Both the position numbers and the translations under genes were made by a program. A stretch of 64,000 bases of DNA from Macrostomum lignano. Its lineage: Eukaryota. Position 1 is the first letter of the stretch. Each line of letters begins with the position of its first letter. Below the pieces are notes generated by a model. The model did not search any database. It saw only the letters and a program-made list of their open reading frames with translations, and had not been told where the DNA came from. Of this stretch, positions 13,001 to 53,625 are shown piece by piece. The stretch is from assembly GCA_002269645.1 (NCBI GenBank), contig NIVC01002923.1, positions 7,933-71,932 of the forward strand, given 5' to 3'.

Positions 13001-14570
13001 ACCTGTGCATCCGAGGCCAGCAACTCCCAACCAGGCAGGAGCTGCGCTACCTGGGTGTCTGGATCGACAGCGGCCTGCTCTTCAAGCGGCAGTCCGACGA
13101 AGTTGCCACCAAACTGCGCCGTCGTTGTGCTGTCCTGCGTGCACTGTCGCATCGCGAATGGGGGTGGGACCGCGCCACGCTTAGGACGGTGTATAAAGCC
13201 GTGGTGGAGTCTGTGGTTTGGCATGCGGCTGCAGCCTGGATGCCCTGGCTCTCTCAGACTCGCCTCAATGACCTGGACAAAGCCCAAAAAGTCGCTCTGA
13301 GTCTTGTCTCTGGTCTACCAAGCTCGACTTCTAGCGTGGCCATCTACCGTGAGGCCGATTGTGTGCCCATCAGCCTGGAGGCCAAACGACGAGCGCTGGT
13401 CACCGTCGAAAAGGCGCTCCGGCGGCCCGAGGCGGACCCCTGGAGGTCCAGGTATGAACTCAGGACCCCCACCCGGCTCAAAGCCAACCGTGGCCTCCGC
13501 GAACAAGCCCACTCAGTGCTCAACGAGATCCTCCCACATAGCCGTCTCCCGGGAGCCTGGGTCAGAGCCCCGCCGTGGGACACACTCAGCGGCTCGGACT
13601 GGCTGAGGCTCTATCCGCAACTGGTGAGACCGCTCCGTAAAACCGACAGTCAGCACACCCACGATCCGATCATCGCCGACACCTTCCGAGAACGCCTGCC
13701 CAGTACCTGCTACTTCACGGACGGCTCCGCTTCGGGTGGCACCGCCAACGGCCAACGGTGTCGCCGCCTGGATTCTGTTTGACCAGGAGATGGGCACGAT
13801 CATCCGGGGCGGCCACTCTGCAGCGGGCAGATAGTGCAGCTCCTTCGAAACCGAGCTCCGCGCGCTCCGAGATGCCGTCGTGGATGTCATCCAGCAGGAC
13901 GTTGACACCGCCGCCTTCTCACCGATAGCCAGGCGGCCGTCAGAGCACTGATAGCCGACCGGCCCACCACTAACGCGCTACTCAAAGACCTGAAGGCCCT
14001 TCTTCGGCAAGCAGCTGGCCGTTACGTTCTCACGATCCAGTGGATTCCCGGCCATGCTGGCGTGGCTGGTAACGAGTTCGTCGATCGCGAGGCCAAAGCC
14101 GCAGCTCTTCTGGATCAAGCCCAAGTGGCCATCTCGCTCGAAGCAGCCAAGCGGTTTATCTACCGCCGTCTCGAGTACCTTCCGGACCTGACCGGCCATC
14201 TGAAGGAGACTTACCAAGGACGCATCACGCACCATAACGGCAGCCGGCGTGAGCAAGTCCTCGTTGCGCAGGTGAGAGCTGGACACTGCCCCTCCTCGGC
14301 CTACTACGCTAAGCGCATCGGCAAAGCTCAGCTGGCCGAGTGCAGGCTTTGGGGGCTCGAGGTAGACCAATTCCACCTGGTCCACTGCCCTGCGATCGAT
14401 GTCGCCCGAAGACAGAACAGCATTTGCAATCTGAAAGACCTAGCCGATGGAAACCTGGTGGCGCGGCTCCTGGAGTGGATCGACTGGACCCCGCTCTAGA
14501 CGGCTGCACTCCGCACTCAACAACAACAACAACAACAACAACAGCAAGAGGAGCAACAACAGCAACAGCA
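10019..14570 (+). mobile_element. Decayed APE-type non-LTR retrotransposon (Ingi/I group): leader, 2A-like peptide, 2 PHD fingers, APE endonuclease, RT, RNase H, C-terminal Cys/His motif, (CAA)n tail
   Basis: Motifs: GNIETNPGP; CGKPL..CRQC..FHLQRIC..WTCSDC; CAKCKK..CNTC..FFHNAC..WRCRFC; LKVLQWNADGI..VMIQESK; YRPP; IIAGDFN; SDH; IVPLLKKGK..FRPVSLTS; GVPQGAVCSPVLFLLYIND; FADD; FTDGS; QWIPGHAGVAGNEFVD. It has several stops and frameshifts, a MITE insertion, and a deletion of RT motif A (DxxKAFD is absent). Confidence 0.93.
11332..11617. mobile_element. 286-bp MITE (hAT- or P-like) inserted in the LINE endonuclease region
   Basis: Perfect 14-bp TIR CATACATGCGCAAC/GTTGCGCATGTATG and 8-bp TSD GAGTGGAG (11324-11331 and 11618-11625). 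Removal restores the frame LKGWSGGTVEG. Confidence 0.93.
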
Positions 14571-15460
14571 GAGCGGTTCTCAAAGACGGCAGCGGAGGGG
14601 CTGGCATCATCATAGACAAGGTCACGCCGCCGCTCACTGCTGCGCTCTCTGACAATATCACCACGCTGCGCATTCCAGCGGGGCGGCCCTGCTCATCGAC
14701 CGCTGCCGAGCTAGTCGCCCTGCTGGCGGCTATTGACTGGCTGTGCAAACTGGACGAACCATGGCACCACGCCCGCATAGCCACTGACAGCCGCAGCGCG
14801 CTGCAAGCCATCACAGGCGAATCCCGGTTGCCGGCCGCCATTAACATCCGGCACCTGCTGGCACACCTCGGGGAGTGCGGCCGCAAGGTGGCTATGATCT
14901 GGATACCGGCTCACTGCGGCCTCCCCGGAAACGAAGCAGCTGATAAGGCAGCTGGTGAAGCCGCAACCATGCCACAGGACAACATGCCGGTTGGCGCCAG
15001 CATCACGAGTAGAGTCCTCCGGAGGCAACTACCGAGAAGGTTCACGCACGACCGGAGCCGCAGGTCTACGGCAGGGAAGCCAGGGTGCAGCGAGCGAGCT
15101 TCGGAAATTGTACCGAAGCGCTAAGCCTGCGCCGCTTCCGCTCCGGCCACTCGATCCAACTTCAAGCTTACAACCTGCGCATCGGACGCGCCGACGACGG
15201 GCTGTGTCAGGCCTGCAAACTGGAGCCGGAAACGGTCGACCACCTCTGCGACTGCCCGGCCACCTGGACGCGCAGGCAGCAGCTCGGTATTGGCGACGCC
15301 GCCGACTTGTGGGCCAAGGAGCCAAGCGCGCTTGCTTACTGGAATTGGTTCCTCACCAGATTCGCGGAACGTTAGACTGCACCGGTGGCATATACACACA
15401 CGCACACACAGCAACAGCAACAACAACAACCGCAACAGCAGCAGCATCAACTGCAGCTAC
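14570..15460 (+). mobile_element. Second, 5'-truncated LINE of the same group (RNase H, C-terminal Cys/His motif, CA/CAA/CAG tail)
   Basis: DGSGGAG..AELVAL..TDSRSAL..WIPAHCGLPGNEAAD, then FRSGH..CQACKLEPETVDHLCDCP, stop at 15375 and a microsatellite tail. Confidence 0.88.
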
Positions 15461-37900: not shown

Positions 37901-40900
37901 AGCTCAGTTAATTACGCTCTAGTCTTTTGAAGCGGACAAATAGTTACTTCTATTTTCTAATGTCGGTTTCCTGTGTGGTCATGCGCGCGCACACTTTATG
38001 TTGTTGTCAAACATAAATGTATGCTTTAATTAACAGTAAGCGTTAACAGTAAGCTACCTTCACCTGAGACAGAGAGAGAGCACTGATGCTATCTTTCTCG
38101 TCTGGTATATTTAGAATCGTTAGTATTCTTATGAATTTTTTATTTTGGTATATTTTCTACATTCTGGTTATTTTACTTTTTTGGTTACTCACAGTAGCAG
38201 GAAACGGCGTCGTGCTCCTATATTTTAATATTTACCTTAAAATCAGTGTCTACTTTTATTATTCATCTGTGGCGAGTGTGTGGTTCTGAAATCGTCTTTA
38301 TCTGACTGTGTTGTATTGCTTCCTTGATGCATTTCACTGAAATATAATAGATTATAATTATTATTCTTAATTAGAACTTACATTTTATCGCCAATTATTT
38401 AATTTTTCCAGCCGACAGCCAGGCCAGCATTGAGTGCAGGCAGCCGATTCTGGACGGCGGCAATCAGAAGCGAGACTGTGACTTTGATGTGAGTCATTGT
38501 GGCTTTGTGGCTATGTAGCTAATCCCTGTAACCATAAAGATAATCATGCAGCTGATCCCTGTGACCATAGAGATAATCATGTAGCTAATTCCTGTGACCA
38601 TAGAGATAATCATGTAGCTAATCCCTGTGACCATAGAGATAATCATGCAGCTGATCCCTGTGACCATAGAGATAATCATGCAGCTGATCCCTGTGACCAT
38701 AGAGATAATCATGCAGCTGATCCCTGTGACCATAGAGATAATCATGCAGCTGATCCCTGTGACCATAGAGATAATCATGCAGCTGATCCCTTTGACCATA
38801 GAGATAATCATGTAGCTAATCCCTGTGACCATAGAGATAATCATGTAGCTAATCCCTGTGACCATAGAGATAATCATGTAGCTAATCCCTGTGACCATAG
38901 AGATAATCATGCAGCTAATCCCTGTGATCATAGAGATAATCATGCAGCTAATCCCTGTGATCATAAAAATATATTCCCCCGGACCGCAACACCGCCAGCC
39001 GGAGCCGCAGTGTGCGGACGAGACCTGCCAGTCTCCACCGCCGCCGCCGCCAACAACGCTGACCCGCTCGCCAACCTCCGAGCTCGCCGACGCCCTGGCA
39101 GCCCCGGACGGTCCCAGCCTTCGGCGAGTCACTTCGCTGCGTCAACGTCGCCTGCTCGACTTCTTCCTAGTGATGGCCGTCTGCAACTCTGTGGTTGTGT
39201 CGATTGACCAGCCGGCCTCGGAGTCGGCCGCCGATTCCACGGCCACTTCCGCTACTTCAGTTGACAGCGCCGTCAAACGATGGAAACGCCAGGTTTGGCG
39301 CCGAAAAGCGCCGCCGGCTGCGTCGTCGGAATTGTCGGCCTCGGCTGCGGTGGCGGCGTCTGCAGCGCCGACGCCGTCGTTGACGCCGTCGCCGACCCCG
39401 CCAACACCGCTGGTGCTGGAGACCGATCAGCTGTCAGCTGGCACGCCGGAGCCGTGTCGGTACACGGACGCCGAGCTGACCAAGGCCTACGTGGCCGAGA
39501 GTCCAGACGAAGCCGCCCTGGTCCGGGCCGCGTGCCGCAGCGGCTGCAAGCTGGTGCAGCGGGACGCCGACTCCTGCCTGGTCTGGCTGCCAGCCGACGG
39601 TCACGTCCGCCTGCCGCTGCTCTGCGTTATGCCGTTCGACGCCGACCGGAAGCGGATGTCGGTGCTAGTGAGGGACCCGGCCACCAACCGGCCAATGCTG
39701 CTAACTAAAGGTGCCGATTGCGCTGTGCTGGACCGGCTCCGGCCGTCCGACCCGGCTGATACGGACTCGGACGCTGACCGGGTGCTGCTGCTCACCCGGC
39801 TTCACATGGAACAGTACTCCGTGGCCGGCCTGCGCACCCTGTGTCTGGCTGTCCGCTACCTGGACGAGGCCGAGTACGCCGATTGGCTGGCCGAGTACAC
39901 CCTGGCTCAGCGGCGCATCCAGGGCCGGGAGGCCGCGATGGCACGGGCGTTCGACCGGTTAGAGGCCGGTCTGGAGCTGCTGGGCGCCACCGGCGTCGAG
40001 GACCGGCTGCAGGAGGGCGCTGCGGACACCGTGGCCGCGCTGCGAGAGGCCGGCATCAGCGTCTGGGTGCTCACCGGAGACAAGCAGGAAACTGCCGTGC
40101 AGGTGCGAGACCGTCTGGACAGGCATATTGAGTCTTTTGAGTCTGGACAGGCATATTGAGTCTTTTGAGTCTGGACAGGCATATTGAGTCTTTTGAGCCT
40201 GGACAGGCATATTGAGTCTTTTGAGCCTGGGCGGGCATATTGAGTCTTTTGAGCCTGGGCGGGCATATTGAGTCTTTTGAGCCTGGGCGGGCATGTTGAG
40301 TCTTTGAGTCTAGGCGGGCATTGAGAATTTTGCCCCCCACATAGTCAGCTTAGCCCTGTTTGTACAAGCTGTATACAGCTCTTGGATACGCCTCGCAGCT
40401 GCTGCAGTCAACGGTTTAAATGGTACTGCAGTCAGAGGGGATGTGAATGATACTGCAGTCAGAGGGGATGTGAATGATACTGCAGTCAGAGGGGATGTGA
40501 ATGATACTGCAGTCAGAGGGGATGTGAATGATACTGCAGTCAGAGGGGATGTGAATGATACTGCAGTCAGAGAGGATGTGAATGATACTGCAGTCAAGGG
40601 GATGTGAATGATACTGCAGTCAAGGGGATGTGAATGATACTGCAGTCAGAGGGGATTTGAATGATACTGCAGTCAGAGGGGATGTGAATGATACTGCAGT
40701 CAGAGAGGATGTGAATGATACTGCAGTCAAGGGGATGTGAATGATACTGCAGTCAGAGGGGATGTGAATGATACTGCAGTCAAGGGGATGTGAATGATAC
40801 TGCAGTCAGAGGGGATGTGAATGATACTGCAGTCAAGGGGATGTGAATGATACTGCAGTCAAGGGGATGTGAATGATAGTGCAGTCAGTGGGAATGTGAA

Positions 40901-43900
40901 TTTTGCAATCGATACTGTATTGGTATTGTTAAACTGCAGGTATCGCAGATCACTAGGCAGAATTGTGCCAGCCCAGAGAGCTAGTGATACTAAGAGTTAG
41001 GTCTGCTGTTTGCCTATACTCCGAACAGTAGAGTGACTAAAACTCAACACTCACTCTCAGGTCGGCCATGCCTGCCGCCTGCTCACCGAAGGCCAACAGC
41101 TGTTGACGCTGGTCGCGGATTCTCCCGCCGAGGCTGGCGACCGGGTTCGCCGCTGGCTTCGCGAACTGGACGTGGCCTACAGGCCGGCCTATCAGATCCG
41201 GCAGCGTCGGGCTCGGCCAGCTGTACGCGACGGCGTCGCCCTGGTGCTGGACGGCCGGGCACTGCGCCACTGCCTAGACGAGTTGGTCAGCTGCGATTTC
41301 CTACTGCTAGCTGAGCAGTGCTCAAGCGTGCTCTGCTGCCGGACTACGCCTAGCCAAAAGGCCGCCGTGGTCGGCCTGGTCAAGGAGAGCCTCGGCATGC
41401 AGACTCTGGCCATCGGCGACGGCGCCAACGATGTCAGCATGATCCAGACGGCCGACATTGGCGTCGGCATCTCCGGCCAGGAGGGCATGCAGGCCGTCAT
41501 GGCTGCCGACTTTTCTCTGGCTAGGTTTCGCTTTTTAAAGAAGCTGCTGCTAGTGCACGGGCACTGGTGCTACGACCGGCTGGCTAGGATGTCTCTGTAC
41601 CTGTTCTACAAGAACTGCGTCTATATTATGATGCTGTTCTGGTATCAGCTTTTCAATGGCTTTAGCGGACAGGTAGGTACAATATGGCTGGCTTTATTTG
41701 AGTGTGTGAATTGATTTTTCCGGTTTCGCATAATATTAGTTTGAATAAATATTGAAACGTTTCGAAATATCAGTTAACAAATGTTTAATGAATATCGAAG
41801 TTAACTGCTGCAGAAGCAGAAAAAGCAGTTGTTGCAAGCAGCAATAGAATTCAGATTTTAGCAATGTTGCAGAAGCAGGTATTAACAATGTTGCAGAAGA
41901 ATTCATTAGCATTGTTGCAGAAGAATTCATTAGCATTGTTGCAGAAGAAGACATTAGCATTGTTGCAGAAGAAGTCATTAGCATTGTTGCAGAAGCAGAT
42001 ATCAGCAATCTTGCAGAAAAAGTCATTAGCATTGTTGCAGAAGAAGTCATTAGCATTGTTGCAGAAGAAGACATTAGCAATGTTGCAGAAGACATTAGCA
42101 TTGTTGCAGAAGAAGACATTAGCATTGTTGCAGAAGCAGATATTAGCAATGTTGCAAAAGAAAACCATTAGCAATGTTGCAGAAAAAATCATAAGAATTG
42201 TTGCAGAAGAAGACATTAGCAAGATTTTAAAACCCAACCTGGGTCCCAAAAACAGGTAAACATCGGCCAGGTGTACCAGATCTGTTTCAATCTAACTATG
42301 ACGTCACTGGGCCCGCTAGTTATCGGCATATTGGACAGGCACCTGAGCGCAGAGATTCTCATGGCTAATCCGGTGCTGTACACGGACGCTCAGAATTGCC
42401 GCAGCTATCTGCCCTGGCATTTCTGGCTCAACATACTAGACGCTGTTTGGCAATCTCTTGTCGTCTTCTTTGTTGCCTATCTCGGCGCTATGGATACGGA
42501 CTGCGGCATTTGGAGCTTCGGCGACACCGTGGTCAGCGCCGGGGTCATCACCGCTGTGGCGCACAACGCGCTGGAGGTGCGCGGCTGGACCGGCCTGCAC
42601 TGGTTTGCGCTGCTGGGTGAGTTGGGCTTCGCTTGGCGTAGCTGACAGCTTTCCGGGCTTGTGTATGGGTGCCTAGTTAATACAGGTTATGGTAGGCGTG
42701 CTTCTGCGTTTGTTAGGATTCTAGATTGATGAAGAATCTGCTTTTATGGGGATTATGAGTTGATAAGGATTATGAGTTGATAGGGATTATGAGTTGTTAG
42801 GTAATATGAGTTGATAAGGATTATGAGTTGTTAGGTAATATGAGTTGATAAGGATTATGAGTTGATAAGGATTATGAGTTGATAGCGATTATGAGTTGAT
42901 AAGGATTATGAGTTGATAAGGATTATGAGTTGATAAGGATTATGAGTTGATAGGTATTGAGTTGATAAGGATTGTGAGTTGATAAGGATTATGAGTTGAT
43001 AGAGATTATGAGTTGATAGGGATTTTGAGTTGATAAGGATTATGAGTTGATAGGTATTGAGTTGATAAGGATTGTGAGTTGATAAGGATTATGAGTTGAT
43101 AGAGATTATGAGTTGATAGGGATTTTGAGTTGATAAGGATTATGAGTGGATAAGGATTATGAGTTGATAAGGATTATGAGTAGATAAGGATTATGAGTTG
43201 ATAGGTATTGAGTTGATAGGGATTGTGAGTTGATAGGGATTATGAGTTGATAGGGATTATGAGTTGATAAGGATTATGAGTAGATAAGGATTATGAGTTG
43301 ATAGGTATTGAGTTGATAGGGATTGTGAGTTGATAGGGATTGAGTTGATAAGGATTATGAGTTGATAAGGATTATGAGTAGATAAGGATTATGAGTTGAT
43401 AGGGATTATGAGTTGATAAGGATGAGTTATGAGTTGATACCTATCCTAAGAGTTGATAGGTATTGAGTTGATAGGGATTGTGAGTTGATAGGGATTGTGA
43501 GTTGATAGGAATTATGAGTTGATAAGGATTATGAGTTGATAGGGATTGTGAGTTGATAGGGATTGTGAGTTGATAGGGATTATGAGTTGATAAGGATTAT
43601 GAGTTGATAGGGATTGTGAGTTGATAGGGATTGTGAGTTGATAGGGATTATGAGTTGATAGGCATTATGAATTGATAAGGATTATGAGTTGATAGGGATT
43701 ATGAGTTGATAGGGATTATGAGTTGATAAGGATTATGAGTTGATAGGGATTGTGAGTTGATAGGGATTGTGAGTTGATAGGGATTGTGAGTTGATAGGGA
43801 TTGTGAGTTGATAGGGATTATGAGTTGATAGGCATTATGAATTGATAAGGATTATGAGTTGATAGGGATTGAGTTGATAGGGATTATGAGTTGATAGGGA

Positions 43901-45696
43901 TTATGAGTTGATAAGGATTATGAGTTGATAGGGATTGTGAGTTGATAGGGATTGTGAGTTGATATGGATTTTGAGTTTTATATAGTAGGGACTCTGAGTT
44001 AATACAATTTATTTAATTGATTGAATTTCTCAGCCAATTAAGATTCTGGATTGATGATGAGGAATCTGTTGGATGTTCCGCTGCTCAAGCACCCAAAAAA
44101 TGGCGATCGCTTAAATCCCCATTTCATCTTTTCCTTTTCGTACAACAGGTAGCCCTCTAATCGCCTGGTTCGCCTTCGCCATCGTGCTAAACCTGGTCTG
44201 CACCAACTGCCTGCACCCGGACAACCCCTATTACGTAATTGTGCACGGCCTGACCACCGCCCGGTTCTGGCTGCCCCAGCTGCTGGCCCCGGTGCTGGCG
44301 CTCACGCCCAGGCTGTGCGTGCGCGCCTATCGGAACACTACGCGCTCGAATCTGACTGCCCAGGTCTGGCCCTAAAGGGGGGTGGCGCTAATTAATAGTA
44401 CTTAAGTTAGACACCTAACTGAGCAGTCGATGTAGAGACAGTCATCACAGATACTATAAATAGATGGGTCCGCGACATTTCACTGCCCCAATGTGACTGG
44501 TGATCCTAACCATAATAATAATTTAATAATAATTGATTACACCTGCCCCAATTGGGCCAGATGTGCAACCGACAGCTCAGCCGCAGCCATTGCGCGGCGC
44601 ATCTGAAGGCTGCGTACGGCTGTTCAGTCCAAGGGTCGCCACACACAGCCTCAATTACCCCAGCTAATGCTGGCACCCATTTTACAGCTGGGTGAACTGA
44701 AGCAATGCAGAGTTAAGTCTCTTACTCAAGGACACAAATTGTTCCTAGTGGGTCGAGAATCGAACCCCCGACCTTTCAGTCGTGAGTCCGACTCTCTTAA
44801 CCACATAGGCTGCAACCCCGTCTTTCAGTTCAGTAGAAGCATCTTAATGTACTTTAGGACAAGAATTTCAAGACTTTTCACGCTAAATGAGTGCCGATAC
44901 CTCGAGGCACAGAGGGTGTACACCCCGTGTGAGCGGTGCCTGTGAATGTATATCCGTCTGTATGCTTAGAGTTCAGCAAAAATAGGCAATTATTCCCCGG
45001 CTCTCTCATCAGGCTTTGCGCCATCAGTCATCGGCCGCGTCCACTCGTTCTACCAAGCCCGCCTGGCTTCTATCGCCGTCGGCTGCGACTCGCCGTCGAA
45101 ACGGCGGCGGCAGCAGCGGTGACGCTGTCGAATTGGCCACCGCTGGCAACTTCGACGGAGCGGCGGTGGCCACCGGAGCCGCTGGCATCATCTCTGTTGG
45201 CGGCGAAGTCGGCCTATCGACCAGCAGCGACCCGCACCGACTGCCGCTGCAAACTCGGCCGCGGACTTTTCCGGGCCCGCCGCCTACGGCTGCCGCTCTC
45301 ACAGCGCTGTCGTCTCGCAGTCTGTCGTTTTTAGTCCGCGGCAACGGCAGCGGCGTCGGGGGCGGTCGTCGGGTTCGAACTCGAAGCGCCTCTTCGGCGG
45401 CGGCAACGGCGGCTGCTGGACGCCGGGCCAGCTGGCGTCATCGCAGCAGCGCAGGCGGCAACGGCGCCGACTGGCCGATCGCGCTTGACGGAGCGGCCAC
45501 GGCCCCGCCTCAGCGCCGCAGTAAAAGCGTTTGCTCCCGTCCTGCTGCCGCTGCCTCCGCCACCGCTACTCCGGCCACTGCTGCCGCCCCCGCAGCCGCT
45601 GCAGCCGTTGTCTCCTCGGACGACAGCGCGGCTACCATGTGCGACTCCGGCAGTGACAGCTGCGGCGCCGTTCCCTGCACCACAACCAGATGCTGA
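27258..45696 (+). CDS. ATP10: P4-type phospholipid-transporting ATPase (flippase), ATP10-like, 12 exons, about 1457 aa
   Basis: Exons 27258-27854, 30660-30739, 31356-31468, 34865-34996, 35081-35211, 35483-35750, 38412-38488, 38999-40102, 41061-41672, 42256-42616, 44149-44363 and 45013-45696. All are GT-AG and phase-consistent, 4374 nt in total. Motifs: [109 protein letters not shown]. The start, exon 7 and the last exon are the least certain. Confidence 0.93.
28195..28460 (-). mobile_element. tRNA-derived SINE family B copy, with a 38-bp head segment repeated about 3 times
   Basis: Shares CACACAGGGTGTACAGCGGCCCT..CATGTACAC..GGGGGTTGGCCCTC with 51930-52210 and 63325-63555. B-box GGTTTGATTCC is on the minus strand. 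Confidence 0.7.
29520..29856. repeat. 41-bp minisatellite (44-bp variants) in ATP10 intron 1
   Basis: About 8 copies of CAGCTTCTACCCTTGCATCGGTGCAACCTGAGGTCATTGAG. Confidence 0.95.
31690..31990. repeat. (TCTG)n microsatellite
   Basis: Direct observation; source of the VCLS/RQTD ORFs. Confidence 0.97.
32530..34765. repeat. Compound minisatellite of 28-34 bp units sharing the core CAGATCCTCAG, in ATP10 intron 3
   Basis: Successive unit types; source of the 500-aa repeat ORFs. Confidence 0.97.
35840..36122 (-). mobile_element. tRNA-headed CORE-like SINE family A copy
   Basis: A/B boxes on the minus strand (GTAGCCTATGTGG; GGTTCGATTC). Near-identical to 44540-44815 and the reverse complement of 58580-58875 and 59467-59758. 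Confidence 0.88.
36950..37800. repeat. 29-bp minisatellite (GGCAGACTCAGGGACTGAGTGAGCGGATA)n with 32-bp variants
   Basis: About 28 tandem units. Confidence 0.97.
38510..38965. repeat. 33-bp minisatellite filling ATP10 intron 7
   Basis: (ATCCCTGTGACCATAGAGATAATCATGCAGCTG)n. Confidence 0.97.
40113..40320. repeat. 28-bp minisatellite starting just after the exon 8 donor
   Basis: (TCTGGACAGGCATATTGAGTCTTTTGAG)n. Confidence 0.93.
40425..40885. repeat. 27-bp minisatellite (TACTGCAGTCAGAGGGGATGTGAATGA)n
   Basis: Direct tandem copies. Confidence 0.95.
41865..42225. repeat. 24-bp minisatellite (TTGCAGAAGAAGACATTAGCATTG)n in ATP10 intron 9
   Basis: Direct tandem copies. Confidence 0.93.
42745..43980. 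repeat. 17-bp minisatellite (GGATTATGAGTTGATAA)n in ATP10 intron 10
   Basis: About 70 units. Confidence 0.97.
44520..44815 (-). mobile_element. SINE family A copy with (TAA)-rich tail
   Basis: Near-identical to 35840-36122. Confidence 0.88.
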
Positions 45697-45814
45697 CGGC
45701 TGACTGGCTGATTTGAGAGCTTGATTGATTCATTCATTAACTAAAGTGTTATTAAATCAACCGATACTTTAGCTAAATGGCTTTCACTTCTAAGTAGCTG
45801 CTCGACTGTCTCTT

Positions 45815-46545
45815 GTCCTTCAGCAGCTGCCTCACCGCCTCCATCTTGTCCTTCAACGGCTGCCCCCACCGCCTCCATCTTGTCCCTCAGCGGCTGCCCC
45901 CAACGCCTCCATCTTGTCCCTCAGCGGCTGCCCCCAACGCCTCCATCTTGCCCCTCAGCGGCTGCCCCAACGCCTCCATCTTGTCCCTCAGCGGCTGCCC
46001 CCAACGCCTCCATCTTGTCCCTCAGCGGCTGCCCCCAACGCCTCCATCTTGTCCCTCAGCGGCTGCCCCCAACGCCTCCATCTTGTCCCTCAGCGGCTGC
46101 CCCAACGCCTCCATCTTGTCCCTCAGCGGCTGCCCCACCGCCCCCATCTTGTCCCTCAGCGGCTGCCCTACCGCCCCCATCTTGTCCCTCAGCGGCTGCC
46201 CCAACGCCTCCATCTTGTCCCTCAGCGGCTGCCCTACCGCCCCCATCTTGTCCCTCAGCGGCTGCCCCCAACGCCTCCATCTTGTCCCTCAACGGCTGCC
46301 CCCAACGCCTCTATCTTGTCCCTCAGCGACTGCCCCCAACACCTCCATCTTGTCCCTCAGCAGCTGCCCCCAACGCCTCCATCTTGTCCCTCAGCGGCTG
46401 CCCCCAACGCCTCCATCTCGTCCCTCAGCGGCTGCCCCCAACGCCTCTATCTTGTCCCTCAGCGACTGCCCCCAACACCTCCATCTTGTCCCTCAGCGGC
46501 TGCCCCCAACGCCTCCATCTTGTCCCTCAGCGGCTGCCCCACCGC
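45815..46545. repeat. 34-bp minisatellite (CCATCTTGTCCCTCAGCGGCTGCCCCCAACGCCT)n, array 1
   Basis: Direct tandem copies. Confidence 0.97.
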
Positions 46546-47357
46546 CCCTATATTCCTTGAGATACAGCTCTGTAATTTATTGATTTGCAGACTAACATAA
46601 CGGAAATTTCACAAATACCCAGACTCAATGCTTTCCATACCAAACCGATAAGTTCGCTAACGTATTCATATTGAAATGTTTTATTAGCTCAGACAGTCGC
46701 ACATTTCTGTTAGCGCAATATCCAAGACACTATGGTGCATTCTGTATTATTTATTATTCATTTATTCAATTTGACAATTATATCACACTTTCAACACACT
46801 CTACTCAATATTATTATTACCATTAGGTTTCTATAATCAGCATTTGTGTTTGCATCAGTGCATTCTGTTTATAACCCTGTAATTGTTAGAGTTTATACCT
46901 ATTGTCTTGTCTCGTATGCGTCTTAGCTTATGTATAAATAATATGTACTTCTATTACTCTGTATTACTATTACTATACTAATTAATGCACAATCGCACAG
47001 ACTTAATAATTCCCACAATTATTAATTATTGCTACGGAAACCGCACCTGTTTAGATGTAAATGCATATATGATTGAAGATATTATTTTTATTACCTTTTT
47101 GTTTCTTCTCACAGCCGGAGTTGAGAAGGCTGGAATAGCTGGCGCGGCTGTCTAACCGGATGCTTTGTTAAATTAGCTTTTCTTACCGTGATTACTGCAA
47201 TCATATTGTATTATTATTAACTTCTTTGTGGTACGCTTGTACTATTTTACAAGTATTTTCTATTCTATTCGAGACAGTTGTGTACTTTTAGATAATTGGC
47301 GGTTTGTGTATTGTACTACACATGATGCTTTCTTTGTTCATTGATTTTTAGCATACT

Positions 47358-47680
47358 GTGCCAGCCTGGGGTTGCCAGCTTGGGGGTTGCCAGCTTGAGG
47401 GTTGCCAGCTTGGGGGTTGCCAGCTTGGGGGTTGCCAGCTTGGGGTTGCCAGCTTGAGGGTTGCCAGCTTGAGGGTTGCCAGCTTGGGGGTTGCCAGCTT
47501 GGGGTTGCCAGCTTGGGGTTTGTCAGCTGGAGGGTTGCCAGCTTGGGGGTTGCCAGCTTGAGGGTTCTGCCAGCTTGAGGGTTCTGCCAGCTTGAGGGTT
47601 CTGCCAGCTTGAGGGTTCTGCCAGCTTGAGGGTTGCCAGCTTGAGGGTCCAGCTTTGGGGTTTTGGAGCTGCCAGCTTGA
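47358..47680. repeat. 15-16 bp minisatellite (GGGTTGCCAGCTTGAG)n
   Basis: Direct tandem copies. Confidence 0.93.
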
Positions 47681-48324
47681 AAATGTCTAGTTTAGGACTG
47701 CCAGCCAGAGTATTTCTACTTGTAATTGCCTCAAGCATTATCAGTGCAGCGCAGTCCCTGGCTCAGTGTGTAGGCAATGTGTATCGCATATTAATTTTGC
47801 TCTTTCATTTAGCAAATCTATTCTATCAGTTTTATTCTATACGCAATATTTCTCAGAGCTAAAAAATAGTATTTCCAGAGCTCATTAGCGGCCAGTCAAT
47901 GACATGGGCATCACGCCTGGTAGCAGTCTTTGCGTATTCTATATAATGCCCTTTTGGGGCTTTTTAAAACTTTGTTTCTGATCTTTTTAACACAGAAAGT
48001 AACCGTTTTGTTTACTTTTTATTGACAGTTATTTTTCATCGATAAGTACCCCATGTACTTTTTTTTGGCTTCACCGGCACCAGCTGGTGGAGCTCGGTAG
48101 AGTTTGGTTGGATGATGCTTTTTAGTCTGTCATTCCGGCAGTTTGTGTTTTTACATAAATTTAACTGATGAAAAATACAATTCCGCATATATCTATTATA
48201 CTGTGTTCAGAACTCCTGAAATGCTTTCGATGAGCACTAAGAATGCAACGAATACTGATAAGATCAATTTCTGCGGTTCTTTGCTGCTCGCGCTTCATTT
48301 ATTTGCTACTTCACCACCGCCCAC

Positions 48325-48905
48325 CGCCTCCACGTTGTTCCTCAGCAGCTGCCCCCAACGCCTCCATCTTGATCCTCAGCAGCTGCTCCACCGCCTCCAT
48401 CTTGTCCCTCAGCGGCTGCCCCCAACGCCTCCATCTTGTCCCTCAGCGGCTGCCCCCAACGCCTCCATCTTGTCCCTCAGCGGCTGCCCCCAACACCTCC
48501 ATCTTGTCCCTCAGCGGCTGCCCCCAACGCCTCCATCTTGTCCCTCAGCGGCTGCCCCCAACGCCTCCATCTTGTCCCTCAGCGGCTGCCCCCAACACCT
48601 CCATCTTGTCCCTCAGCGGCTGCCCCCAACGCCTCCATCTTGTCCCTCAGCGGCTGCCCCCAACGCCTCCATCTTGTCCCTCAGCGGCTGCCCCAACGCC
48701 TCCATCTTGTCCCTCAGCGGCTGCCCCCAACGCCTCCATCTTGTCCCTCAGCGGCTGCCCCAACGCCTCCATCTTGTCCCTCAGCGGCTGCCCCCAACGC
48801 CTCCATCTTGTCCCTCAGCGGCTGCCCCCAACACCTCCATCTTGTCCCTCAGCGGCTGCCCCCAACACCTCCATCTTGTCCCTCAGCGGCTGCCCCCAAC
48901 ACCTA
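48325..48905. repeat. 34-bp minisatellite, array 2 (same unit and orientation as 45815-46545)
   Basis: Direct tandem copies. Confidence 0.97.
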
Positions 48906-49241
48906 GTCCTAGTTCAAAAATTTTATGTCGTTAATTGCGCAGCAGAAAATGCCAAGTGTGGTTTTATTTTATTAAAATGAGATTTATCGCTATTTAGCTT
49001 TTACTTTCAGCATTTTTCACACTAATATTAAATTAGCTGCAATTAAATATAAATTATAGCGATTATATGTAGTAAAGCTATACTACCAACTCAGCTGATA
49101 TTTTACTGCGCAATATGTGATGACATTTACTGCACTCTAGTATGTATATATTGTACACAATCGCAGAGCCAAGAAGAGAGCAGTAATCATTATCTGACAA
49201 TCGCCAAGGCTCTTGAGAAAATACGAATCAGCAGCGCAACT

Positions 49242-49454
49242 ATGCGAGTCCTTCAGCTCTGCCTGTTTCTGTGCGTCCTCTGCTCGGCCGTCCTGGCGAG
49301 ACCGCCGCCTATGGAAAGACCGTATTCTGCCGGCACGCAGGGCGCCGGCGACGGCAAGATCATCGTCTGTATGGATTCGCCCCTGCAGACGGTGACAGAT
49401 AGACCTCCACTCACTCCTCCTTCTTGGCCAAGGCCTGGCCGGAGGACTGACTGA
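49242..49454 (+). CDS. Small secreted protein or candidate amidated neuropeptide precursor, 70 aa
   Basis: ATG start, signal-peptide-like MRVLQLCLFLCVLCSAVLA, GC-rich codons in an AT-rich context, C-terminal PPSWPRP-G-RR, and two AATAAA at 49514 and 49523. Confidence 0.6.
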   Translation: MRVLQLCLFLCVLCSAVLARPPPMERPYSAGTQGAGDGKIIVCMDSPLQTVTDRPPLTPPSWPRPGRRTD

Positions 49455-49836
49455 CTGACTTGAGAGTTCGAAACGACTTGTTAAAGACGTCTTGAACAGA
49501 TTAATCGGATATCAATAAATATAATAAAGCATTGAAGATTTTTTTCTACAAGCAAAGGGTATAATAATACATGTACAAAGTATAATACAATTCCAGGTAA
49601 TTAATTTCGCGGCGAATATCAGTTCGAAGTCGACTCGGCGATATGAATTCGAATCAGATTGTAGTATGGTAGTCAGGTACTGCAAAGCAAGCTATTGCGG
49701 TTGATTGTAGGGGCATAGGCACACTGAATCCTGCACAACTGTGCTTATCGCGTGTGGTCCCATCTTCAACTCCCAGACTGCCAATAAAGCTTATCAATCA
49801 GTTCTCAGACTGCCAGCCACCTCCAGTCGGCAGTTC

Positions 49837-52800
49837 TCATCGAAGAGACTCAAGAAACACTAGCTGCTCAACCAGGCCGGCAGCCTCAGCATCCGAGGTG
49901 ATTTCGCGCAGCCTGAGCGCTTTCTGTGCTGCGCTACGGCCGGCGCTGGTCGTCAGGTAGCTGTAGACCGCAGCGAAGTCGAACGCGCCGTCGCTTTCAG
50001 CGGCGCGTCGTTCGCAGCGCCGGCGCAAGTCGCTCAGCGTCCGGTCGAGGCCGGCCTGACCGAAACGCGATCCGGTCGCCTCGTCCGGCGCGTCCTCGAA
50101 GGCGCTGGCCAACCGGCCGCTGCGGGCCAAGGCCGCCTCGAGTTCCTGAGCGAACCGCAGGGTGGTGTCGCAACTGGCGCCGGCAGCCGCGGCTGCTGCG
50201 TCCTCTCGCTCTTCATCTTGAGCTTCCTCATCGAAGTCGGGCGTGTAGTAGGTGTCCGCCAGCTCAGGGTTGACCATTGCGGCTTCTCTGATTGGCTGTT
50301 TTCGGTCTGGGATTTGGAAAGCGGCGTTTATGGGATTTGGGATTCGGAATGCGACGTTTATGGGATTTGAATGATGCATTTATGGGATTTGAATGATGCA
50401 TTTATGGGATTTGAATGATGCATTTATGGGATTTGAATGATGCATTTATGGGATTTGAATGATGCATTTATGGGATTTGAATGATGCATTTATGGGATTT
50501 GAATGATGCATTTATGGGATTTGAATGATGCATTTATGGGATTTAAATGATGCATTTATGTGATTTGGGATTCGGAATGCGACGCTTATGGGATTTGAAT
50601 GATGCATTTATGGGATTTAAATGATGCATTTATGTGATTTGGGATTCGGAATGCGACGCTTATGGGATTTGAATGATGCATTTATGGGATTTAAATGATG
50701 CATTTATGTGATTTGGGATTCGGAATGCGACGCTTATGGGATTTGAATGATGCATTTATGGGATTTAAATGATGCATTTATGTGATTTGGGATTCGGAAT
50801 GCGACGCTTATGGGATTTGAATGATGCATTTATGGGATTTAAATGATGCATTTATGTGATTTGGGATTCGGAATGCGACGCTTATGGGATTTGGGATTCG
50901 AAAAGTGACGTTTATGGGATTTGAATGATGCATTTATGGGATTTAAATGATGCATTTATGTGATTTGGGATTCGGAATGCGACGCTTATGGGATTTGGGA
51001 TTCGAAAAGTGACGTTTATGGGATTTGAATGATGCATTTATGGGATTTAAATGATGCATTTATGGGATTTGGGATTTGGAATGCGACGTTTATGGGATTT
51101 GGGATTCGAAAAGTGACGTTTATGTGATTTGGGATTCGGAATGCTACGTTTAATGCGCCCTCGAATTGGAATCCGGAATGCGGAGTTTATGGGTTGGGAG
51201 CTCGTGCTTCGTTTATTTTATTCATTCGTATAATATTTTGTATTCTATAGTTAATTTTTTAATCGAAAAATCCTTTCATTGCTACTCATAGTAAAAAACC
51301 AGCCCCTGCCACTCCAAACCTCGTCTCCCATCGGCACCCGACGGTACGAGGTCGTCGCACTCCTCGGCGTCGGCTTCATCCTCAGACTGTTGCGGCTCCT
51401 CCTCGGCCAGACCCAGCGCGGTCAGCAGCGCCGCCGCGCGTCGTCGGTCGACTCGGTCGACGCCGTCGCCATCGGCCGTGGACTCCTCGCGAAGCAGCCG
51501 CCTGCCGGCGCCTCCGCCGCCGCCGCAGCTGGCCTCGGCCGCGGCCGCCTCTTCGTGGATCTGCTTCGACCGGCGGCGCAGGTGCGGCTCCCGCAGCAGC
51601 TCCCTGGCGCTGGCCCTCCGCTGAGGCTCCTTCTCCAGCATCCGCTCCAGCACGGCCTGCAGCGCCCTGGGATATCTGTCCGGCAGGGTGGGGCAGGGAT
51701 CTTCGCAGATGCTGAACAGGATCCTCATCAGGCCGTGCCCGGTGTACGCGTGCTCCTGGGCGCACATCTCGTACAGGATGCAGCCGACACTCCAGACGTC
51801 GCTCTTGGCGTTGTAGCCTGGTTACAATAATAACAATAATATTAATAATAGTAATAATAATAATAATAATAAATAATATGATAATTGCAAGAGTGTTCTA
51901 AAGACTTTTTAGTCGAGCACATTACTCATACACACGCTCACACAGGGTGTACAGCAGCCCTGACTTTCTAATCGTCAGGCATGTACACTCTCTCAGGCAT
52001 GTACACTCTCTCAGGCATGTACACTCTCTCAGGCATGTACACTCTCTCAGGCATGTACACATGCATGTGCCTTGGGGGGTTGGCCCTCGTGGGTGAAAAT
52101 TTCATGACAACCCCACGGTCAATTTTCGTGCACAAGGCCCAAATGAATGAGGCCGAATGTGGGATCGAACCTGGGCGCGAGAGTTAGACCCGTTCACTAC
52201 TGAGCTGCTCTGCCCCTGAGGGAGCAGGAGTATAGTGTGTCTACACCCTCACAGACCATTGGTTACGAGGTCTCAGGTTGATGACCTAGCTGTCCTTACC
52301 CGAAAGAAGCATCCTGGGGCATCGGTCTCTCACATCTCTGAAGGGTCGGGACCCGGTAGCAATAATACACATTGATGCAGTCTGTGTTAAAATAAAACTT
52401 TCTCCCGTGCCTCACCCTGATGCTTGAGCAGTTCCGGACTCATAAAGTACGGCGTCCCCAGAAAAGTAGTGGCCATGTCCACCGAATTCATGAGCACCCG
52501 AGCGATGCCAAAGTCGCCAATTTTAACCATGCCGCCCTTTAAAAATACGTTTTTCGTCTTCAGATCCCGGTGTAAAATCCGCTTCCCGTGCAGGTACTCG
52601 ACGCCTAGGAGGATCTGGATCAGCCAGCGCTCAGTGGTGGCCACGGGCAGGTGCAGACCGGCCTTCTTCAGGCGCTGGATGGCCTGGTCCAGGTCGCCTT
52701 CGTCGCAGTACTCGGTGACCATGCAGAACGAGGGCAGGTCTGTCGCGAAATTCGGGGTGCCGGCTGTTAGACTTGAAGACGGTTGTTAGACAGCGGTGTC

Positions 52801-53625
52801 AGCTGTTAGACAGGGATATCAGCTGTTAGACAGGTATATCAGCTGTTAGACAGGGATATCAGCTGTTAATCAGGGATATCAGCTGTTAGACTTGAAGACG
52901 GTTGTTAGACAACGGTGTCAGCTGTTAGACAGGGATATCAGCTGCTAGACAGGTATATCAGCTGTTAGACAGGGATATCAGCTGTTAGACAGGTATATCA
53001 GCTGTTAGACAGGGATATCAGCTGTTAATCAGGGATATCAGCTGTTAGACAGGGATATCAGCTGTTAGACAGGGATGTCAGCTGTTAGACAGGGATGTCA
53101 GCTGTTAGACAGGAATGTCAGCTGTTAAACAGGAATATCAGCTGTTAGACAGGTGTCATGTGTTAGACAGAGATGTTAGCTGTTAACAGGAATGTCAGCT
53201 GTTAGACAGGGATGTCAGCTGTTAGAAAGGAATGTCAGCTGTTAAACAGGAATGTCAGCTGTTTGACAGGGATGCCGGATGTTAGATTTCATCTGTTAGA
53301 TAGTGTCAAACAACCGTCTGTTAGACAAGAAGAGTGGTCAACGTGTCATTACGCTGTAAGAAAACTCACTGACAAAGCAGTTAAAGAATTTTAAAATAGC
53401 AGAGTGGCTGAGCTTTCCCAGCAGTTTTGCCTCGTGAATGGCTTCAACAGTTTCCTCGGGGTCCAGTTCGCCGATGTGCACCTCCTTTAACACTTTGAAC
53501 TTCTCCGCGCTTCGTAAATCTTCCACTAAGTAGGCGGTGCCATAGGCGCCCTTTCCAATCTTTTTCAGTAATTTGTAGCGATTGCTGAGAATCCGAGGTT
53601 TTGAAAGCTGCCTCCCTGAGGCCAT
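49837..53625 (-). CDS. NEK11: NIMA-related serine/threonine kinase NEK11-like, 4 exons, about 502 aa
   Basis: Exons 53625-53370, 52739-52416, 51817-~51348 and ~50295-49837 (the exon 3/4 junction is ambiguous). Motifs: IGKGAYG, KVLKEVHIGELDPEETVEA..EAKLLGKL, HRDLKTKNVFLK, IGDFG, GTPYFMSPELLKHQGYNAKSDVWS. The C-terminal AVYSYL..LVEQLVFLE resembles the NEK11 tail. Confidence 0.92.
50320..51150. repeat. Compound 22-bp minisatellite with a 74-bp higher-order repeat, in NEK11 intron 3
   Basis: (TTTATGGGATTTGAATGATGCA)n followed by GACGCTT recurring at 50581, 50655, 50729, 50803 and 50877. Confidence 0.93.
51930..52210 (-). mobile_element. tRNA-derived SINE family B copy with an internal 18-bp tandem expansion
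   Basis: Minus-strand AGCTCAGTAGTG..GGTTCGATCCC; (CAGGCATGTACACTCTCT)x4-5. Confidence 0.75.
52765..53320. repeat. 20-bp minisatellite (CAGCTGTTAGACAGGGATAT)n in NEK11 intron 1
   Basis: Direct tandem copies. Confidence 0.95.

Follow-up and report, generated by a model that had tools for sequence, protein, structure and literature searches.

A small gene beside NEK11 in Macrostomum lignano that may encode a secreted, C-terminally amidated peptide

Introduction

Does a short open reading frame (ORF) lying beside a NEK11-like kinase gene of the flatworm Macrostomum lignano encode the precursor of an amidated signalling peptide, or is it something more ordinary? The ORF belongs to a 64,000-nt stretch of contig NIVC01002923.1 (assembly GCA_002269645.1), referred to here as the window, in which it starts with ATG and occupies positions 49242-49454 of the plus strand (70 codons, with the TGA stop included in the span). 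Its 70-aa product can be written MRVLQLCLFLCVLCSAVLA-RPPPMERPYSAGTQGAGDGKIIVCMDSPLQTVTDRPPLTPPSWPRP-G-RR-TD, followed by the stop. An initial annotation, made from the letters of the window, took it for a probably unannotated neuropeptide or hormone precursor that would release a peptide ending in WPRP-amide.

Our preferred answer, which we hold tentatively, is that the ORF is a real, lineage-restricted gene for a small secreted and probably C-terminally amidated peptide. That the gene is real and transcribed, has its coding sequence (CDS) in a single exon and encodes a 70-residue secretory prepropeptide is the best explanation of the evidence set out below; its identity as a neuropeptide is only a reasonable guess.

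Results

Existing annotation and transcript evidence

The gene is already annotated, and it is a functional name that is missing. GCA_002269645.1 carries a called gene at 49191-49454, and the description "probably unannotated" given initially was therefore mistaken. The 87-aa product of this call is 5'-partial, consists of YLTIAKALEKIRISSAT followed by MRVLQ..., and is named at best "hypothetical protein, partial". The call begins neither at a methionine nor after a stop codon (the in-frame upstream stop lies at 49050-49052), and such a start is what TransDecoder would give on a transcript beginning at about 49189-49191. The annotation of this assembly was made from RNA-seq only. It combined StringTie/TACO with a mapped de novo transcriptome, used trans-splicing and poly(A) reads to set boundaries with TBONE, and assessed coding potential by TransDecoder (PMC5730564). 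Taken together with the 5'-partial call, this means that a transcript covering the ORF almost certainly exists.

No ATG other than that at 49242 occurs within 49151-49245, so the modelled transcript has none before it; it stands in the context GCAACTATGC, where position -3 is A. Among the ways in which its proposal could fail, the initial annotation had named the lack of a transcript and splicing between ACG and GTGACA. The gene call is transcript-derived, and the donor is not used in the annotated model, whose CDS is unspliced. Neither the ATG-started 70-aa product nor a longer UniProt model described below (P0002) had a record on the contigs when looked up exactly.

Composition, coding potential and chance expectation

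The GC content of the ORF is 62%, compared with 34-39% in its flanks. At 100-nt resolution, values of 56-67% fill exactly the stretch 49200-49450, with 25-36% before it and 24-31% after it. The neighbouring genes show the same pattern, their exons standing out as GC-rich islands within AT-rich non-coding DNA. A codon-usage model trained on 1087 codons from the two neighbouring genes scored the ORF frame best of six (-8.9 versus -18.9 to -37.8 log2 units). The right frame was thus picked, although the support from codon usage is weak at best, as expected of a proline-rich peptide, and is not decisive.

Two crude rules, a signal-like N-terminus and G[KR][KR] within the last 15 residues, were applied to all 178 ATG-started ORFs in the window with a length of 40 aa or more. 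A signal-like start was present in seven, most of these within repeats, and the C-terminal motif in four; the ORF described here was alone in combining both. No Pfam family matched the 70-aa product and no Rfam family matched the locus.

Leader, predicted structure and processing

The leader passes a heuristic hydrophobicity test and the -3/-1 rule, and has an uncharged hydrophobic core of 16 residues. AlphaFold2, run with no alignment, predicted a helix over residues 2-18 (predicted local distance difference test score, pLDDT, 83-92) and coil over the rest (pLDDT ~50-56), consistent with a signal peptide and, behind it, an unfolded propeptide. The mature part is rich in Pro and Thr/Ser, contains a single Cys (Cys42) and four Arg-Pro dipeptides, and has a net charge of about +1 (4 R and 1 K against 3 D and 1 E). 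At its end, P65-G66-R67-R68-T69-D70-stop presents a Gly plus dibasic amidation motif two residues from the C-terminus. All that had been observed of the anatomy of the gene was borne out: the compact 70-aa ORF with its 19-aa leader ending in AVLA and its G-RR-TD end is present at the positions given, the leader is signal-peptide-like by the hydrophobicity test and the predicted helix, the amidation motif is canonical, and a plausible poly(A) signal, the twin AATAAA placed about 60 nt past the stop, is found there as well (Table 1).

Prohormone convertase, carboxypeptidase E and PAM make up the established amidation pathway. Were the product to follow it, the first AUG of an mRNA of ~350 nt would open the ORF, the signal peptide (residues 1-19) would be removed after Ala19, and the remaining proline-rich chain, predicted by AlphaFold2 to be unfolded, would enter the regulated secretory pathway. 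A prohormone convertase would cut after Arg67-Arg68, a carboxypeptidase would trim both Arg, and amidating enzymes would use Gly66, giving a product that ends ...Ser-Trp-Pro-Arg-Pro-NH2.

Where the N-terminus of that product would lie is less clear-cut. General rules for convertase sites consider whether Pro follows the Arg and whether a basic residue stands at P4, P6 or P8. The initial annotation had proposed cleavage at the monobasic R54, but Pro follows R54 and there is no basic residue at P4, P6 or P8, so a cut between R54 and P55 is unlikely. All four Arg of the mature part sit in Arg-Pro; because every internal Arg precedes Pro, canonical internal cleavage is improbable altogether, which leaves a 46-mer amide or a shorter fragment. 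The first option would be the whole 46-residue amide of residues 20-65 (monoisotopic mass 4967.50), whose one Cys might allow a disulfide dimer. The second would be a shorter C-terminal fragment released by a non-canonical protease, for which PPLTPPSWPRP-NH2 would have a mass of 1242.687. The corresponding calculated masses are 1226.692 for its Ala61 variant and 553.313 for WPRP-NH2. In planarians, RNA interference (RNAi) of pc2 alters peptide profiles and many amidated peptides have been sequenced by mass spectrometry (PMC2953531), so flatworms own the processing machinery.

Comparison of two genomic copies

The NEK11 cluster includes a second genomic copy, PAA62851.1 (BOX15_Mlig023502g1), on contig NIVC01001894.1. 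The locus there (L002; NIVC01001894.1:153875-178034, reversed) has the same order of ATPase gene, gap with the small ORF, and NEK11. Positions 48900-49900 of the window align without gaps to 15097-14097 of L002 at 99.1% identity, and identity falls to 95-98%, with many indels, in the repeat-rich parts. The ORF frame is intact at 14546-14755 (minus strand) of L002, and both the leader and WPRPGRR are kept. Conservation of this motif, which the initial annotation had suggested checking in related flatworms, is here seen in one 99.1%-identical copy of the same genome, and it holds for the motif and fails for the residue before it: the single replacement in the second copy, S61A, lies beside the Trp (...PPAWPRPGRRTD). 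Downstream, an A>T difference at 49518 turns the first AATAAA into AATATA in the second copy, where the other hexamer is intact.

Nine clear substitutions separate the copies over 48900-50320 (a tenth mismatch lies at the alignment edge), four of them in the 213-nt ORF. Three of these four are synonymous third-position changes (codons 35, 57 and 70) and the fourth is S61A (P ~0.06 for at least three of four being synonymous). The last exon of NEK11 (~450 nt) shows no substitution. Because no change creates a stop or an indel, these thin data hint at coding constraint on the frame. They also hint that the ORF stretch may be changing faster than its surroundings, which is unlike strong constraint.

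The same comparison was useful for another candidate. A signal-like 59-aa ORF at 47683-47862 (plus strand; MSSLGLPARVFLLVIASSIISAAQS...; 38% GC), over which there is no gene call, differs in the second copy by two replacements and no synonymous change, and is probably a chance ORF.

Homology searches

In a word-index search of proteins, the 70-aa product had one match, the window's own 87-aa gene call. HMMER returned four matches: the protein itself, a UniProt entry (P0002) and two further proteins (P0003, P0004) that were rejected as homologues, their matches being repeat-driven at 27-43% identity. The UniProt entry, A0A1I8F4J5, is a 1579-aa model from an older M. lignano assembly, named as a PhoLip_ATPase_C domain protein. 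It spans about 39000-51800 of the window on the plus strand and joins out-of-frame ATPase exons, satellite, residues 1-36 of the ORF and then, after a frameshift, antisense NEK11 exons; read against the window, it is a chimeric artefact.

A full-length search with NEK11 found no other Macrostomum species, the next matches being molluscs at ~50% identity. Since no other Macrostomum appears even for NEK11, the lack of matches to the small ORF says nothing on its conservation within the genus. Older NEK11 paralogue loci (L003 and L004; 68% identity, with kinesin neighbours) contain no homologue of the ORF and no WPRPGRR. Within the searchable literature, no flatworm RP-amide or PRP-amide and no dedicated study of M. 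lignano peptide hormones was found.

Comparison with known peptide systems

In overall design the gene appears to resemble a single-peptide amidated prohormone, and it belongs to no named family. Flatworm prohormones of this kind (Schmidtea mediterranea npp/spp genes, Smed-grh-1) are likewise short (~60-100 aa), with a signal peptide and a peptide-Gly-basic arrangement, and among planarian prohormones Pro-amide ends exist (QVPG-KR and DWLPG-KR; PMC2953531). Unlike them, the M. lignano gene has no clean basic site N-terminal to the peptide. No sequence similarity to described flatworm prohormones was found, and RPG[KR], PRPG and WPRP are absent from the planarian and schistosome sequences in the supplements of PMC2953531.

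The closest resemblance at the C-terminus is to cnidarian peptides. That RP-amide or PRX-amide peptides exist in cnidarians is correct, the initial annotation having named the former, and the agreement goes further than it supposed. W62-P63-R64-P65-G66 contains the identical tetrapeptide, plus amide donor, of the Clytia PRX-amides (Che-pp1 and Che-pp4, giving WPRPamide, WPRAamide and RPRGamide), among which WPRP-amide is the oocyte maturation-inducing hormone (MIH), active at 10^-8 to 10^-7 M (bioRxiv 10.1101/140160). Clytia MIH acts through a G protein-coupled receptor (GPCR; PMC7053711). Cnidarian PRX-amide precursors, including those of Clytia, hold multiple tandem copies of peptides of 3-6 residues, whereas in M. 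lignano, a member of another phylum, there is one, at the end of a 46-residue proline-rich chain; the 70-aa product has one PRPG, and no other lies beside a basic pair in any frame of the window. HMMER gave no precursor homology to cnidarian PRX-amides, its matches there being the protein itself and the artefactual M. lignano model. A proline-rich sequence with a Pro-Arg-Pro-NH2 end is also seen in Antho-RPamide (LPPGPLPRPamide), which shares five of nine positions with LTPPSWPRP, a short match of low complexity. The RPamides of Nematostella derive from HRPamide and FRPamide precursors, and receptor phylogeny indicates independent expansions, with no direct cnidarian-bilaterian orthology (PMC11087051).

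Other families were considered and set aside. Nematode RPamides (NLP-2/22/23/46) are a protostome family with an Arg-Pro-NH2 end made from ...RPG plus a basic site; they have FRPG, a G[F/W]XPG motif and conserved Ala3, Gly5 and Arg6, and act on GnRH-like receptors (PMC7303124). By inspection, the SWPRPG end does not fit the G[F/W]XPG/FRPG motif. In the GnRH/AKH/corazonin superfamily the peptide was taken to come directly after the leader, with an N-terminal Gln (pyroGlu), a length of ~8-12 aa and then G-K/R-R; in the M. lignano product Arg20 follows the leader and G-RR lies 46 residues downstream. The peptide of Smed-grh-1, QSYHFSNDWLPGKR, directly follows its leader, and the M. lignano peptide does not. 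Proline-rich antimicrobial peptides (apidaecin, drosocin, Bac5/7) are also secreted, Pro-rich and disordered, with Arg-Pro/PRP repeats. Such peptides are strongly cationic, and the candidate, despite four RP motifs, has a net charge of just about +1.

Genomic context

The positions of the gene's parts and of its neighbours are collected in Table 1. A TATATAT at 49145 and a TCATT at the modelled start would be compatible with a promoter. The kinase was recognised as NEK11-like from a full-length protein search in which the best non-flatworm matches are named Nek11. Its minus-strand stop codon (49837-49839) lies 382 bp from the ORF end, tail to tail, where 380 bp had been stated; the coordinates given initially were refined by 1-2 nt.

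Table 1. Positions of the small gene, its predicted parts and its neighbours (window coordinates)
Feature	Position	Strand	Remarks
P4-type phospholipid ATPase	CDS ends at 45696	+	Upstream of the small gene
TATA-like element TATATAT	49145-49151	+	Seen in sequence; ~40-45 nt 5' of the modelled transcript start
5' leader of the annotated transcript	49191-49241	+	Without ATG; read in the gene call as 5'-partial CDS YLTIAKALEKIRISSAT
CDS of the putative 70-aa prepropeptide, including TGA	49242-49454	+	From ORF reading, GC, frame score and intact second copy
Signal-peptide-like leader, M1-A19	49242-49298	+	MRVLQLCLFLCVLCSAVLA; ends AVLA, V at -3, A at -1
Proline-rich pro-region or mature peptide, R20-P65	49299-49436	+	46 aa, predicted disordered; ends ...PPSWPRP
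Candidate PPLTPPSWPRP of the initial annotation, P55-P65	49404-49436	+	Second copy: PPLTPPAWPRP
Gly66-Arg67-Arg68, putative amide donor and dibasic convertase site	49437-49445	+	Then Thr-Asp and stop
Poly(A) signals, AATAAA twice	49514-49519, 49523-49528	+	T-run after; first begins 59 nt past the stop
NEK11-like kinase, PAA54370.1 (BOX15_Mlig023502g2)	49837-53604	-	

The annotated NEK11 CDS is also 5'-partial: it begins at Ser8 (53604), 21 nt downstream of an ATG in the same frame at 53625 (MASGRQL-SKPRIL...). A query with the 134-residue C-terminus of NEK11 (49837-50240, minus strand) gave no match at E <= 0.001, although the full 508-aa protein (P0005) was found by the full-length query.

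Between the ATPase and the small gene lies a 34-bp satellite in two arrays, at 45811-46540 (~22 copies) and 48320-48904 (~17 copies), with 93-96% matches; it is open in all three frames and produces long fake ORFs (PPTPPSCPSAAAPNASILSLSGC...). A derivation of the ORF end from this satellite (RLPPTPPSCP compared with RPPLTPPSWP) was considered unproven, the tblastn E value of ~0.005 coming from a tiny database with no composition correction and blastn giving no DNA match. A 15-bp unit is repeated at 47359-47662, between the satellite blocks, and the NEK11 introns hold tandem units of 22, 74, 104 and 148 bp and of 20 bp (50357-51131; 52784-53273). The arrays are not equally long in the two genomic copies. 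The M. lignano genome is reported to contain 15% tandem repeats (PMC5730564), and the arrays seen here are in line with this.

Discussion

The most likely role of the gene, judged from its sequence, would be that of a lineage-specific secreted signalling peptide, either a neuropeptide or a hormone. The initial interpretation as such a precursor is in part sustained, by the leader, the amidation motif and the poly(A) signals, and in part withdrawn, as regards the unannotated status and the cut at R54.

Several observations weigh against it. A HMMER search of 1.84 billion cluster representatives found no homologue outside M. lignano. There is one copy of the peptide and no clean N-terminal cleavage site, cleavage at R54 being doubtful, and the RR site has at P1' a less than ideal Thr. 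In the second copy the gap between ATPase and NEK11 has no gene call, and S61A alters what is presumed to be the active end. The excess of synonymous changes comes from four substitutions, with the antisense frame yielding an equal count, and nowhere in the 1.4 kb compared do the copies diverge more than in the ORF (P ~0.03 for at least four of nine substitutions falling in it). Its codon log-odds are negative, ranking 73rd of the 132 ATG-started ORFs in the window. Length alone is unremarkable, a 70-codon open frame having by our own arithmetic a chance of ~13% per frame at 62% GC. Leader and motif would coincide by chance ~0.16 times per 64-kb window, about once per six windows, so these sequence features alone would turn up by chance in a genome-wide scan. 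The ORF stands above chance because it has independent support from the transcript-derived gene call, the coinciding GC island and the intact second copy.

The alternative that survives best, though we think it rather unlikely, is that the secreted product is real and is not an amidated signal. It would then be a lineage-specific, fast-evolving secreted protein of gland, adhesive, mucus or seminal fluid, in which G-RR is incidental. The protein searches, empty outside the species, would suit such a protein, as would an ORF that diverges faster than its flanks between copies, a Pro- and Thr/Ser-rich composition predicted to be disordered, and a single copy of the motif with no N-terminal cleavage site. 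Reproduction-related genes of Macrostomum are reported to evolve rapidly (PMC7336406). What speaks for an amidated peptide instead is the place of G-R-R, two residues from the C-terminus, which is that of the amidation signal in single-peptide prohormones; a motif of this sort in the last 15 residues occurs in just 4 of the 178 window ORFs, and it is kept in the second copy.

It is somewhat less probable again that the transcript is non-coding or noise, and that what TransDecoder accepted is a frame left open by chance where GC is high. At 62% GC it is common for a frame to stay open this long, and over the same stretch two others run for 53-60 codons without a stop; the negative codon log-odds, the expectation of 0.16 such feature combinations per window, the lack of homologues and the unannotated state of the 99%-identical second copy all point the same way. 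Against this, the limits of the GC island are almost exactly those of the ORF, which begins at the first AUG of the transcript in a good context. Its frame exceeds the other five by 10-29 log2 units, three of its four substitutions are synonymous with none creating a stop, a clean signal-peptide helix is predicted, and no Rfam match was found.

A more far-reaching proposal is that M. lignano makes a WPRP-NH2-ended peptide which acts through a GPCR as PRX-amide-type signalling in a bilaterian, whether inherited from the ancestor shared by cnidarians and bilaterians or strikingly convergent, and possibly in the reproduction of this hermaphrodite; we regard this as very unlikely. Stricter, and slightly less probable still, is true membership of the cnidarian PRX-amide family that includes MIH, with a short ...WPRP-NH2 acting on a related GPCR, perhaps reproductively. 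The predicted end is the same as that of the tetrapeptide most potent as Clytia MIH, cnidarians have Antho-RPamide-like peptides with proline-rich N-terminal extensions, and the receptor for Clytia MIH clusters with families of neuropeptide receptors from bilaterians (PMC7053711). But the match covers just four residues in a proline-rich context, one copy stands here against the many tandem copies of cnidarian precursors, and HMMER gave no precursor similarity. A large receptor study found no direct cnidarian-bilaterian peptidergic orthology (PMC11087051), and neither RPG[KR] nor PRPG occurs among the planarian and schistosome prohormone sequences in the supplements of PMC2953531.

Least probable of all is a reading in which the ORF forms one inner exon of a much larger gene, as modelled in A0A1I8F4J5 (P4-ATPase, satellite and residues 1-36), with an internal Met and no signal peptide. 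That model does contain ...SQEESSNHYLTIAKALEKIRISSATMRVLQ...GTQGAG, and it uses an AG acceptor (49165-49166) and a GT donor (49369). But it has conserved ATPase exons in the wrong frame, translated satellite and a continuation into the antisense of NEK11 exons, and so is an artefact. Neither copy in the newer assembly has the frameshift that the model shows after codon 36, and in the transcript-based annotation the ATPase stops at 45696 and the small gene begins at 49191.

We therefore return to the small secreted, probably amidated peptide as the reading to carry forward. M. lignano serves as a transgenic, regenerating model among flatworms. Annotation by homology routinely misses orphan prohormones that are confined to one species. 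If no such peptide is made, the locus would be a reminder that a signal-like leader and G-RR arise together by chance about once per six 64-kb windows in a GC-patchy, repeat-rich genome. If validated, an amidated peptide here would be a new ligand in the flatworm peptidome, and if its WPRP-amide end is made, it would bear on PRX-amide signalling, so far a cnidarian hallmark, in Bilateria.

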